From the NCBI RefSeq assembly GCF_002571385.2, contig NW_019217905.1, forward strand, positions 124,070-188,069: a stretch of DNA of 64,000 nucleotides. Reading direction: 5' to 3'. Shown here in pieces: positions 278 to 64,000 of the stretch. This stretch comes from Stylophora pistillata (Eukaryota). Within the stretch, counting starts at the first letter, position 1. Each line of letters starts with the position of its first letter. Made by a program: the position numbers and the translations under genes. Under the pieces are notes generated by a model that searched no databases, was not told the origin of the DNA, and saw only the letters and a list, made by a program, of their open reading frames with translations.

Positions 278-630
278 CGAGTGCATATTTTCAAGTGAAT
301 GCTCTGCACGGGCTGATGTTTAGGTGGTGGCCTTTTGTTGTTTTTATTCTTATTCTTTTTCTTTTCTTTTTCCTTTCTTTCCTTCTCCTTTCTTTTCTCC
401 TCTTTTCTGCACTTTCTTCTCGCTTTCTTGCCTTTTAGTTTCTTACATCGTTTAATTCCTCCTTTTCCCTTCTGATTCTTTTTATCTTGCCCTTCATCTT
501 CCTCAGCTTCATCTTGCACAGGACCAAACAGATTGCCAACTTGAGGTTCTTTAATTTCTTTAACCGTCACGTTTAGGTCAAACTTACAAATCTCGCCGCG
601 TGTTGAAGGAACGTTGTAACGAACTTCAAC
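278..630 (-). CDS. C3: C3-A exon with Lys/Arg-rich alpha/gamma junction insert
   Basis: VEVRYN...CKFDLNVTV, an acidic stretch, then a K/R-rich C-x11-C insert and LKICTR; 353 nt. Confidence 0.92.
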
Positions 631-3600
631 CTGAAATTTAAACGCATGTTTGTAAGATAATTTTCTACTCGTTCAATAATGCGAAAATTCTTCCACAAAC
701 CATGGGTAAGAGTGCAGGGATGGCCTTCTGAAAATTTCTCCTCATCAAGCGGCAAGCAAAGGATTCTACATTGTTTCTTTCACCAAGTGAGGTGGTCAAG
801 ATGAGAGAAACTGTCGATGGTTTAGATTTTTTTGACAGTTAACAAAATCTCAGATCTCATATTAATAGCTGACAACAATTCAAATCCGACTACATAGTGA
901 GACAAACGATTATACTTCACATAGAAAGTGCATACACCAAGATGAGAAACCGTAACCATTTATATACGATAAACGATATACGATATTTACTCACCAAAAA
1001 AAAAAAAAAGAAAAGGAAAAAAGGATGTTTTCTGGACTTAAAAAGTGTACATTTTAATGACAGGGCTGAAAAATGAAATGCTACGTCAGAGGGTTTGCGG
1101 TCATCAACGCGGACTCTAGTGTTCTAGGTCTAAAACTTAGCGAAATTAGCGGAAAATAATAAGGGCTGTTATTTAAAACCGAGGAACTTTGTTTTCGTCA
1201 AAGGCATTTTCCTATTTCCAGAGGTTTTAAAGAGAAATTAATTTTCGAAAATTTTTAGGGGGTGTACCAAGTTTTTGGAAATTGTTTTGTAAAAGAAAAG
1301 CGAGAAGGAAAACGACGCCTCGAAGCAACAGAATACGGAATCAATCCTGTAAACTACACAAAAATCCGTTTTCCGCGGCAAAACTTAGCGCATGCGCATA
1401 AGTTATTCAGCTCTGTCCATTTTAATCTAATTCATTGCAGTATGAAGACGTTGAGCGAAAGGCGAGAATAAAGGTGAAGTGCCAAATCAATGAGAAGAGT
1501 TTAAAAACAAAAAAATCGTCAAGTGCATAAGTCTTTTCCCCCAAGGCGATCAACTGACCATGATCGCGCACAAATCTCGAAGGACAGAAGCTCATGAATT
1601 TCATTCCACATCCCGATATCCGACTGGTTTTCCCACTTTACCCGCACGTTGTGTCCGGTGTAGTTGACAGGATTTTATAAATTCATTGTTAATCTTACCT
1701 CCAGCATTCCTACTCCGCTTCCTTGAGTGTCAACAAAGAGATTTCCCCCAAGGAGATCCTTGATCTGCAATGAAATACATAAATAATTTTTACCCTCAAG
1801 TTTCAATGCGCGCTCAATTACCCTTGAACATGATATGCGTTTTGATTCAAATGTTTATCAATAAAGTAATTTGCTTTAGATTGGCTTTATTCTGCAATGT
1901 TATTGATCCAGAAAAGTCGTGCCATTTTGTCAACCAATCAGATCCAAAACTGTAACCTATCACGACTCGGTCACTCGCATTCCAGTCTGATTGCCTTAAC
2001 TTTTGTTTCTCAAAGGCTTCTCGAGATTCAATCACAATGCGCTTTATACATGACTTTAAACATCAAGTAACGTGTAGTTCATTCTAAACCATAGCTGTAA
2101 AGAAAACTGTTCAAAAACATATCGACTTGGTGTTGTAAAACCAAAACGAGCGTTACCACAGCCAATCAGAAAAAAATATATCCTACCAGAAAACAATGGA
2201 AATTCAAGGTGACCACATGCCACATGCGAACGCCAAAGCCCCGATAGGTTTCACTAATGCATCAAATCGATTGAAAAGGAAGAACCAGTTTTCTACAACA
2301 ATCACAAAGCAACGCAGACTCAAACCAACGAAATTGCCGCTTAATGTTGACCCTCGATTGTCAATTGCTTCATAGCTACCAAGTATCTTAATCACAATCC
2401 TTACATCAAATTGTCTCCGCAGCAGCGCATTATCTGACGTGATGCGCACCGGCGCTGGTTTCCAGTCACCATCCACTTCTGATGACAATTTCACTCTCAT
2501 ATCCAAGTTGTTACCTGCGGTCTGTTCGCTGTACATAGCCAGAGCTTGAAGAGCGACCACTGTATCCTAGAAGGAAATAATTCTGTTTGATACATTGTCT
2601 AGAAAAATGGCGATCAGCTCTCTGAGTCAAAACAAACTTGCAGCAATTTCTCCTTCCTGATTTCTCGCTAAGAAATGCTTCATCCGATAGACAAAAAATC
2701 TTAAGCTTGAAATAAAATAAACCCCAAATAAACTGATCACTCTAAATTCCCACAAAAGTTTGCTGTTATTACTTCTGGAACACTCTTGGTGTTTGTAACA
2801 GAAAAAGCTCATAAGTAACTAGAGAAACTGAAGCATTCGGGATACTCCTACATTACATCGTTGAAAGGTTTTTAATGCATTCATTGTTTTGAGTCCCGCG
2901 ATAGTTGGTCGCCTTAGTCCCCCGGTAAGCATTCGAACCTTATCCAACAGCACTGCAGAAAGCTCGAATGCGAGCAGCCTTGTTCCCAACGTTCTTTTTT
3001 CCTACACCAGCTGGAGTAAGAGAGGGGAGAGGTAAAAGACAAACCCTGGGAGAGAGGTTGGTTGGCAAATAAGGCCATTTACTAAGATTAATTACGACAC
3101 GCGTACTGCATACTGCTTGAATCAGCAACATGACAAAAAAAAAAAAAAAAAGCAAGAAATATTTGAAAAATAAATTATCAGGCGAGTCTCACTTTTTAAC
3201 TAATTTGTTTTACAGACCTGAGTAGACACGAATCCAGCACCGCCCTGCCTCTGACTAGTCATGTAGGTGACAATAGGACCTGCGTAACCTGTGCGTCCGA
3301 GAAGGACTTGAGTCATCAGCGCATATCCAGCGGTCTCCACATCCAGTGCGTTGCCACCAGTATTCCAGTAACGAGACTTTTTAGCTGAAAGGAGAAACGA
3401 AAACAAATCTAAAACAAATATTTCAAAGTTTTTTTTAAATTAATATCTCATTTTTATCATGCATACATCAGGCCTCAAAGTTTATTGCAAACCGGATTTT
3501 GTGCCTGATGCTGAACAAATTTGCCCAAAAATTCTATGGGGTCTCTAACGAATATCTTGGACCACACAAAATGCAGCGTCAGACTGGACAAGAACCATGC

Positions 3601-63090: not shown

Positions 63091-63122
<32 letters not shown>

Positions 63123-64000
63123 AACGTCAGCTTTTTTATTCGTTTCGGTGGCCAATTTGTAATTTCAACTGAGTTGATATAACAAAATTACCTTGTTACC
63201 CCCACCGACGCAGCACCACAGTTTCTTTAGGAACTTTTAGCCTTCATTCATTGAAGTATTGTAGTGGTCACATCGACAAGTATTTTTATAGGTGCACATT
63301 ATCTTACTAATTGCATTTATTCATCTTTTTATCGTTTTTAATATTTTAAGCTTTCTAGGCTTAAACTTTTTCTAATTTTGGTGTACAATTTATCCCCTTT
63401 CAATTGAAGAAATAAAAAAAATTTCATCGAAGTGAATTAAAGATATAGCTAAACGTGCGCACGAAGCCTGTAACACGATACTGCAAATTATGCCCTCGAA
63501 AACAACCACTCTAGGAACGTTTTGAGTCGATGCCGTCTAAAATTGTGTGATTATCCCAAAAATTATAGATCAAATTGTTCGAGACTATCAACCTATCAAG
63601 TTTTTGTCAAGTGTTACTTCAAAAACACTTTCTTCCAGCTACCGCAAAGCGTACCGTGAACCGCTGAAATGACGCGCGTGATCAGTGCCAGTGGAAGTAT
63701 AAATGGGGTAACATTGGCCCATTGTATCTCTTAAACAAGCACGGTGACCTATCTTTTGTAATGAATTTTATTTAAACAGACATTGGTAGGAAACATTTAA
63801 GGAAATTTTAAAAAAGCTTGTTCGATAACTTTTTTTTCTGAGGAATCACCTTAAACCTAGAGTTTACTGAGCATTTGGGTTGTATTTTGGTAGGCAAAGT
63901 TGTTTTTACTCACCATTTCTACCATATTTTTCTACACAACAGTTCCAGAAGGCCTCTCTGCAGTCATCAGGCAAATTTTTGTTGGCGTCCAACGAAAGCT
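47675..64000 (-). CDS. C3: Complement C3-like thioester protein, paralog B (anaphylatoxin domain to C345C; 5' part outside window)
   Basis: Exons: 63914->64000 (partial, CREAFWNCC), 62332-62452 (SALLGR|S, FPETW), 61514-61751, 60068-60310, 58695-58746, [possible 57554-57562], 57161-57223, 56286-56477 (GCGEQ 56392-56406), 55586-55664, 54826-54988 (VIHREM), 54240-54320, 53830-53998, 52968-53134, 52712-52867, 51497-51565, 50893-51245 (K/R insert), 50499-50586 (GMAIMDIGILTGF), 49865-49936, 49616-49721 (VYDYYEP), 48969-49064, 48800-48877, 47675-47991 (C345C, TGA stop). Intron positions and phases match C3-A except in the CUB loop. Confidence 0.95.
48080..48419 (-). mobile_element. LINE 3' end with (ACT)n tail, running into an assembly gap
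   Basis: Minus-strand peptide SLHGFKSKIR...DGCKKCALCSS*, then AATAAA and the trinucleotide tail at 48080-48152. Confidence 0.45.
50343..50398. repeat. (CT)n microsatellite
   Basis: Seen directly. Confidence 0.95.
50893..51245 (-). CDS. C3: C3-B exon with Lys/Arg-rich alpha/gamma insert
   Basis: 353 nt, paralogous to 278-630. Confidence 0.92.
51830..52516 (+). mobile_element. LINE (CR1/L2-like) 3' fragment
   Basis: SRLTIR...RIGTKVWNE ORF2-tail-like peptide, AATAAA and a (TATG)n tail. Confidence 0.45.
56286..56477 (-). CDS. C3: C3-B thioester exon (PTGCGEQTM)
   Basis: GCGEQ motif; same 192-nt length as the C3-A exon. Confidence 0.97.
58933..59664. mobile_element. Inverted plus tandem ~249-bp repeat carrying three tRNA-Thr-like sequences, 12-bp TSD
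   Basis: tRNA-like units at 59056-59128(-), 59271-59343(+) and 59520-59592(+); flanking direct repeat ACAAGGCTATAA at 58921-58932 and 59665-59676. Confidence 0.8.
59271..59343 (+). tRNA. tRNA-Thr(GGT)-like sequence, probably a repeat-borne pseudo-tRNA
   Basis: Cloverleaf: GGCTTGT/ACAGGCC acceptor stem, TAGCTCAATTGGTAGAGC D arm, CT-GGT-AT loop, GGTTCGAATCC T arm; imperfect stems. Confidence 0.35.
62880..63250 (+). mobile_element. Penelope-like element 3' end and pseudo-LTR
   Basis: FQIGTLNPTGINERFSFH* followed by a hammerhead motif; homologous to 10250-10460, 14660-14822 and 44720-45225. Confidence 0.7.
63096..63132 (+). ncRNA. Minimal type I hammerhead ribozyme motif (PLE-associated)
   Basis: GCT-CTGACGA-AGGGCTAACGCTC-GAAAC-GTC-AGC: intact core, stem II, GUC triplet, short stem I. 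Confidence 0.65.

Follow-up and report, generated by a model that had tools for sequence, protein, structure and literature searches.

Background

The oldest complement enzyme has two halves, C3 and factor B. Their vertebrate descendants C4, C2 and CFB are linked in the major histocompatibility complex (MHC), and the age of this linkage, ancient or secondary, is debated. At least two C3 genes and two to three factor B genes are known from anthozoans (PMC4840205), and a C3-like gene is counted in the amphioxus proto-MHC gene list (PMC10751288). The present work concerns a stretch of 64,000 bases from the coral Stylophora pistillata (the “window”; C122:124070-188069 on a contig of 673,909 bases, in an assembly totalling 397.6 Mb), in which a factor B gene (Bf) lies between two C3 genes, here named C3-B and C3-A.

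Complement genes have been described in Nematostella (NvC3-1/-2, NvBf-1/-2 and NvMASP) and Aiptasia (C3, Bf-1 and Bf-2b), and their domain plans match those of Stylophora, including the extra CCPs and the conventional trypsin-like domain. Those studies dealt with cDNAs and expression, and a literature search found no statement on genomic linkage; likewise, in a full-text literature search, C3-Bf linkage was not reported for any cnidarian or other invertebrate. The constituent genes of the Stylophora locus had already been annotated and are ordinary anthozoan complement genes; it is their C3-Bf-C3 arrangement that appears to be unreported.

Results

A compact C3-Bf-C3 cluster

Three complement genes were arranged head to tail on the minus strand in the order C3-B, Bf, C3-A, together spanning about 87 kb. 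The window (38.7% G+C, four N runs) was extended by 40 kb of fetched sequence on each side to delimit the genes, and negative positions and positions over 64000 lie beyond it. Domains were called exon by exon against Pfam. The genes and spacers were as follows:

47675..64000 in the window (the 3' 16.3 kb), continuing to 82039, minus strand: C3-B gene (exon blastp, Pfam)
43334..47674, no strand: spacer between C3-B (stop) and Bf (ATG), 4.34 kb
30365..43333, minus strand: Bf gene, RefSeq XP_022788979.1 (P0244), 905 amino acids, “complement factor B-like”
27040..30364, no strand: spacer between Bf (stop) and C3-A (ATG), 3.33 kb, N-free
1..27039 in the window (the 5' 27 kb), continuing to -5316, minus strand: C3-A gene (Pfam by exon; colinear with C3-B)

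The C3-B gene ran from an ATG at window position 82039 to a stop at 47675-47677 (about 34.4 kb in total, from exon blastp), Bf from an ATG at about 43333 to a stop at 30365-30367, and C3-A from an ATG at 27039 to a TAG stop at -5316 (about 32.4 kb in total). Both C3 genes extend past the window edges, and neither is complete within the 64 kb. A scan for hallmark motifs located GCGEQ in the open frames 6111-6710(-) and 56104-56544(-), GDSGG in the open frame 30368-31006(-) and DxSxS in the open frame 38098-38442(-). An earlier note on this DNA had proposed a same-strand, head-to-tail C3-Bf-C3 order with spacers of about 4.3 and 3.3 kb and no gene in either of them. The motifs and the Pfam calls by exon bear out the order, the strand being minus; the measured spacers agree with the proposed lengths; and the open reading frames (ORFs) of both spacers matched no family in a Pfam search. 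The compact C3-B/Bf/C3-A complement cluster of S. pistillata is very probably real.

Domains, motifs and exons of C3-A and C3-B

Both C3 genes are predicted to encode C3/C4/C5-type thioester proteins with the full domain set. The macroglobulin core (Pfam MG1, MG4, A2M_BRD, A2M and A2M_recep) was present in exons of both; each starts with a signal-peptide exon and ends with a C345C exon, and the exons between are colinear in the two genes. For C3-A, MG1, MG4, A2M_BRD, ANATO, A2M and TED fell in the window, and A2M_recep and NTR before its start; for C3-B, A2M, TED, A2M_recep and NTR fell in the window, and MG1, MG4 and A2M_BRD past its end. A C3-B ortholog searched against Pfam as a whole protein (P0182) had the complete macroglobulin domain set. 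The diagnostic exons and sites were:

12187..12631, minus strand: C3-A beta-alpha site (RKKR) and ANATO exon (Pfam ANATO, 27.4 bits; motif)
11468-11614, minus strand: C3-A convertase site LLAR|N (motif)
6138..6368, minus strand: C3-A thioester exon, GCGEQ (motif, Pfam)
4703..4894, minus strand: C3-A TED exon carrying VIHREM, the catalytic His motif (Pfam, motif)
63915..64000, continuing to 64058, minus strand: C3-B ANATO exon (six-Cys pattern)
56284..56478, minus strand: C3-B thioester exon, GCGEQ (motif, Pfam)
47678..47991 (to 48001 by transcript ORF P0121), minus strand: C3-B last exon, C345C/NTR (Pfam, transcript ORF)

The GCGEQ thioester and the VIHREM motif, which we take to be the counterpart of the human C3 His motif, were kept by both genes. 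Both also carried furin-type beta-alpha sites (RKKR in C3-A, RRKRR in C3-B) and convertase sites of the form LL(A/G)R (LLAR|N or LLGR|S). The ANATO domain of C3-B scored 17.9 bits in Pfam, where the cut-off is 21.4, and its anaphylatoxin call is by the six-Cys pattern only. The NTR (C345C) domain scored 54.8 bits in C3-B and 63.5 bits in C3-A; to our knowledge, this C-terminal domain does not occur in A2M, CD109 or insect TEPs. Across the genome, C3-type C345C last exons were found in C3-A and C3-B only, and TED exons elsewhere were located on two other contigs only (C36 and C51). A genome-wide Pfam search for ANATO gave no match, and likewise none in control genomes, so that it was uninformative. 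When single exons were searched against the PDB, that for NTR had no match and that for A2M could not tell C3 from A2M or CD109.

C3-A and C3-B were 58.8% identical and colinear over 38 exon anchors, and at 33 of these the offset of the donor GT was equal in the two. In a reference-guided splice model, at least 12 pairs of exons agreed in length and phase (74, 52, 85, 75, 52, 163, 167, 353, 88, 106, 96 and 78 nt). The shared intron positions claimed in the earlier note are borne out by these donor offsets and equal exon pairs.

Two further features of the C3 genes were observed. The 353-nt exon, of equal length in both (278-630 and 50893-51245), encodes a long Lys/Arg-rich insert with no Pfam match. 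Within a C3-B intron, three tRNA-Thr (AGT, GGT, AGT; Rfam 42-55 bits) lie on both strands in fewer than 540 bases (59056-59592), and could be either genuine tRNA genes or repeats derived from tRNA.

The factor B gene and its paralogs

The middle gene, by its predicted product, encodes a factor B/C2-type protease with six CCPs, a VWA domain with a metal-ion-dependent adhesion site (MIDAS) and a trypsin-like domain; the whole P0244 protein matched six Sushi, VWA and Trypsin in Pfam. Its exons were assigned as follows:

about 43333, minus strand: first coding exon, six codons, followed by a gtgagt donor (RefSeq protein mapping)
42442-42379, minus strand: signal-peptide exon (RefSeq protein mapping)
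38590..41782, minus strand: six Sushi/CCP exons, all phase 1-1 (Pfam)
38134-38448 (MIDAS), 35898-36263 and 34496-34624, minus strand: VWA exons (Pfam, motif)
33486..33602, minus strand: first protease exon with the R|IVGG site (protein mapping, motif)
30368..30964, minus strand: last protease exon with Asp102, Asp189 and GDSGG (Pfam, motif)

The first exon was placed from the RefSeq protein, as a search by signal peptide and homology alone did not locate it. The MIDAS motif DASTS corresponds to residues 444-448 of P0244 and lies in the exon 38134-38448. As for the catalytic triad, the Asp and the GDSGG Ser are in the assembly, and the His is known from the RefSeq protein and transcript ORFs. 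A search with the Bf protease exon retrieved a spliced ORF (P0001) that was 97% identical, and whose 90% cluster includes XP_022788979.1.

Human factor B and C2 (PDB 2ok5, 2xwj and 9qj4) were the only solved proteins that aligned to Bf in one stretch, from the CCPs through the VWA domain to the protease start (E about 1e-47). The coral and human factor B proteins have the VWA MIDAS signature DxSxS in common, but the coral protein has six CCPs and human factor B/C2 three. Taken alone, the coral protease exon resembled MASP-1/-3, thrombin and factor IX more than human Bf, with the R|IVGG site kept, and the VWA exon did not retrieve Bf in a PDB search.

The genome holds at least two Bf loci, one of which is linked to C3. 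The second, on contig C837 (102,598 bases), has a complete six-CCP gene (Bf-2; 40646-31458, minus strand), about 50% identical to the cluster Bf, and no C3 exon was found when C837:1-50000 was read for them. The same contig also carries a partial Bf copy at its start, a decayed Bf protease exon with three stops (C837:25894-26529) and an additional CCP-rich gene at 44.7-49.3 kb. Metagenome contigs scanned with the Bf protease exon gave 80 loci, which were 57-73% identical to Bf-2 versus 46-55% to the cluster Bf; there were no C3 exons in their flanks, and since the loci are of Bf-2 type they are uninformative on the cluster. Some Bf-like metagenome or metatranscriptome contigs of other corals (L013, L014, L016 and L017) had CCP or VWA segments after the protease segment on the same strand, or a CCP abutting the protease start, which suggests Bf genes in tandem, chimeric assembly or splice forms like those of MASP.

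Conservation in other corals and age of the C3 duplication

Orthologs of two of the three genes were identified in Pocillopora damicornis. The Bf ortholog (RMX42631.1, pdam_00010272; P0140, 872 amino acids; UniRef name “C3/C5 convertase”) was found in a 71%-identical Bf exon cluster and was 76.8% identical to the cluster Bf versus 50% to Bf-2. The C3-A ortholog (RMX42634.1, pdam_00010271; P0168, 1409 amino acids) came from an 87%-identical last-exon cluster and was, exon by exon, 70-96% identical to C3-A versus 41-70% to C3-B; its gene model lacks TED exons, unlike C3-A of Stylophora. The contig recorded for each of the two has 416,276 bases. Bf and C3-A are thus neighbours in P. damicornis too, because their locus tags are consecutive on one contig; the adjacency was read from locus tags and recorded contigs, and not directly from gene order or distances. 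No C3-B ortholog was found in P. damicornis, and the supplements of the P. damicornis genome paper held no pdam_0001027x entry. Orthologs of C3-B were present in P. meandrina (CAH3033002.1) and P. verrucosa (XP_058947660.1), and Pocillopora as a genus has one-to-one orthologs of C3-A, Bf and C3-B, a set that also includes P. verrucosa XP_066021325.1.

Recorded contig sizes extended this comparison. One Pocillopora contig size (61,276 bases) was shared by two last exons, one C3-A-like and the other C3-B-like, and another (14,855 bases) by a last exon of C3-B-like type and a protease exon of Bf; these coincidences fit the same three-gene order but are no more than suggestive. A 672,630-base contig of a further coral is recorded for a C3-A-like last exon (P0133, 81%) as well as for three protease exons of Bf (P0005-7), and the three Bf exons grouped with the clade of the cluster Bf (97/98 support).

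In the last-exon tree, C3-A and C3-B formed separate clades (100/100), both with Stylophora and Pocillopora members, and the C3-A clade additionally took in three more distant rows. The C3-A/C3-B duplication is old, as the paralogs share about 59% identity and Pocillopora and other corals have separate orthologs of each. It happened well before the split of Stylophora from Pocillopora, and it also predates the split from the three distant C3-A-like rows. The old duplication proposed in the earlier note is in line with the two clades. The cluster itself is at least as old as the family, with the Bf-C3-A adjacency kept in Pocillopora.

Transcription of the cluster genes

Bf and C3-B were both transcribed and spliced, as seen from 14 Logan ORFs in the P0001 cluster for Bf and from ORFs P0121 and P0243 for C3-B. 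Reads over 41900-47899 came from two DNA runs of a 2024 study (X1 and X4), one metatranscriptome and one stranded RNA run (X21). The last of these defined the end of the C3-B transcript:

46950..47674, minus strand: C3-B 3' untranslated region (3'UTR; X21, minus-strand sense, with molecule ends piling up at 46950)

Soundness of the assembly and of the reading frames

Four N gaps, one repeat and one stop codon bear on the continuity and integrity of the cluster:

44414..44442 (29 N), no strand: the sole gap within a spacer and the one that matters for linkage
48420..48652, no strand: N gap in a C3-B intron; flanking exons joined in transcript ORF P0121
31653..31673, no strand: N gap in Bf, between exons 33486-33602 and 30368-30964; the only unread place there
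5664..5676, no strand: N gap in the C3-A intron that separates the thioester exon from the following TED exon; flanks colinear with C3-B
44700..45900, no strand: high-copy interspersed repeat (summed depth about 290,000, versus about 100-160 alongside)
14561..14563, minus strand: in-frame TGA in a conserved C3-A exon (about 14581-14507; exon alignment)

Several observations weigh against a continuous cluster of three intact and jointly expressed genes. Short-read contigs stop at the spacer repeat and none of those listed crosses 44.9-45.4 kb, and at this point the join of C3-B to Bf rests on the reference assembly and on the shared Pocillopora contig sizes (14,855 and 61,276 bases). The Bf exon with the catalytic His (residues 662-706, 45 amino acids) had no match anywhere in the assembled window. 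One of the three genes, C3-A, has the TGA in the reference, and may be a null allele there or contain a sequencing error. Finally, the first Bf exons were nearly silent in X21, their coverage being at most about 1/20 of that predicted from the level of C3-B.

These points were weighed against two alternatives, that the cluster is an artefact of assembly, with a misjoin at a gap or at the repeat, and that C3-A is a pseudogene, C3-B and Bf alone forming the working unit. The four N runs and the repeat, at which short-read contigs end, are what a misjoin would need, and the earlier note had named the gaps as the places to look. At the gaps the assembly held. The one in the spacer (44414-44442) was crossed by DNA contigs of both X1 and X4, hundreds of bases on either side, which omitted 22-23 of the 29 N, and because of these crossings in two independent samples the two sides of the C3-B/Bf spacer are continuous there. 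The Bf/C3-A spacer is gap-free. The gaps within genes have colinear exons on both sides or exons joined in transcripts: exons 49092-48967, 48893-48792 and 48001-47678, around the C3-B gap, are joined in P0121 (97% identical), and beyond the window start a run of 2073 N (-2072..0) sits in a C3-A intron with colinear flanks. At the Bf gap, both the RefSeq protein and transcript ORFs include residues 662-706, and in the paralog on C837 the His-bearing residues form an exon of their own (32304-32453) between the same two exons; because of this separate exon, the gap at 31653-31673 hides the His exon and is larger than written. The repeat at 44.7-45.9 kb, crossed by none of the listed short-read contigs, is the one weak point left. 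With the Bf and C3-A orthologs also adjacent in P. damicornis, the misjoin reading is largely refuted, and an artefactual cluster is highly improbable. As to C3-A, an in-frame stop in a conserved exon, and the fact that no spliced C3-A transcript was obtained, are what a pseudogene would predict. The stop differs by a single base from the Gly codon expected from Pocillopora; the residue is Gly in the P. damicornis ortholog and Glu in C3-B, whose 38 mapped exons have no in-frame stop. The exon that bears the TGA has its acceptor and donor in common with C3-B, no further in-frame stop was seen in the exon-by-exon alignments of C3-A, and it keeps the signal peptide, the processing sites, the thioester, the catalytic His and the C345C domain intact, with a last exon 87% identical to its orthologs. 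An error or a heterozygous null allele is the better explanation of the TGA, and a fixed pseudogene is unlikely. A continuous cluster with three genes remains the preferred reading.

The expression data bear on a different claim. Because the 5' exons of Bf were nearly silent and the C3-B 3'UTR was well covered, C3-B and Bf were not equally expressed in the X21 sample, and this coverage argues against their tight co-expression in it. The co-regulation that the earlier note had suggested was not borne out by this one stranded run.

Further copies of the spacer repeat were seen at 10186-10451, 88.8-89.0 kb, 93.6-93.9 kb (L007) and -10.9 kb (L002). Elsewhere the repeat adjoins GIY-YIG (Penelope-like) ORFs, and in X21 it was transcribed from both strands.

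Neighbourhood of the cluster

The flanks, from -40 to +104 kb, held genes for rhodopsin-type G-protein-coupled receptors (GPCRs), one weak match to HECT, and the remains of integrase, reverse-transcriptase and GIY-YIG sequences. The GPCR genes were:

window -31.4 kb, plus strand: rhodopsin-type GPCR gene (L004:8541-9629(+))
window 96.9-100.5 kb, plus strand: rhodopsin-type GPCR genes, an apparent tandem pair, one split by stops (L008:2938-4390(+) and L008:5299-6463(+))

The earlier note had raised the idea of a proto-class III module, with class III neighbours near the cluster. In a genome search in which NELFE and TNX were not searched, homologs of RAI1/DXO were on contigs C44 and C64 and DSHCT (SKIV2L/MTR4) homologs on C2, C45 and C2852, STK19 was not detected, and the 674-kb scaffold of the cluster (C122) had no DXO, SKIV2L or STK19 homolog. 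The neighbours looked for were on other scaffolds or undetected, and the proto-class III reading is not supported, except by the adjacency itself within corals.

Discussion

Origin of the linkage

Two accounts of the C3-Bf adjacency can be compared. It may have arisen within stony corals or anthozoans, perhaps when a C3 gene was duplicated across a neighbouring Bf, and have been kept by inertia with no homology to the class III C4-C2-CFB linkage; or it may be ancestral to cnidarians and bilaterians, that is eumetazoan, with the class III linkage as its direct descendant. The class III framework homologs DXO, SKIV2L and STK19 were not on the 674-kb scaffold, and the cluster is surrounded by GPCR genes and transposon remains, findings that favour an origin within corals and speak against an inherited class III block. 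The second Bf locus adds to this: of two or more Bf loci, a single one is linked to C3, and neither the 50 kb read on C837 nor the flanks of Bf-2-type loci in other corals contained C3 exons. Conservation of the cluster was seen only in Pocilloporidae and one further coral, also as expected of a coral innovation.

An ancestral linkage would fit with C4, C2 and CFB being linked in vertebrates and with coral C3 and Bf lying 3 to 4 kb apart and adjacent across genera. It would fit, too, with the C3-like gene of the amphioxus proto-MHC (PMC10751288). Given the age of the C3 duplication, the arrangement itself could also be old, which tempers the case for a coral origin, as does a comparison limited to corals. 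That same scope, scleractinians and no bilaterian, counts against the eumetazoan account, for which the literature search found no report of such C3-Bf linkage. We consider an origin within stony corals or anthozoans somewhat probable, and direct descent of the class III linkage from a eumetazoan one distinctly unlikely; if the latter were true, part of the proto-MHC would predate bilaterians.

Proposed function and significance

By homology, C3b would bind Bf, and the activated Bf protease would then cleave more C3, as in the alternative-pathway convertase; such a convertase mechanism is inferred for the coral proteins. A complex prediction of the Bf VWA domain with Mg and the C3-B C345C domain gave a score of 0.00, which is evidence neither way. 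A functional role of the linkage, for example in shared regulation or in co-adaptation of the partners, could be imagined, and the cluster offers a handle for studying how complement genes are jointly regulated in coral immunity and symbiosis. At present this is a solid but modest comparative-genomics observation: a three-gene coral cluster with spacers of 3 to 4 kb, kept across genera, which gives the debate on the age of the linkage a concrete locus.

Comparison with vertebrate class III

The vertebrate MHC class III region (C4A/C4B, C2 and CFB) is one system to which the coral cluster can be compared, and there, likewise, the gene of a thioester protein is linked to that of a Bf/C2 convertase protease. 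The layouts differ. In the coral, unlike in vertebrate class III, a C3 paralog lies at 3-4 kb on each side of a single Bf, a C2/Bf tandem pair is absent, and the scaffold has no SKIV2L, DXO or STK19 neighbour.

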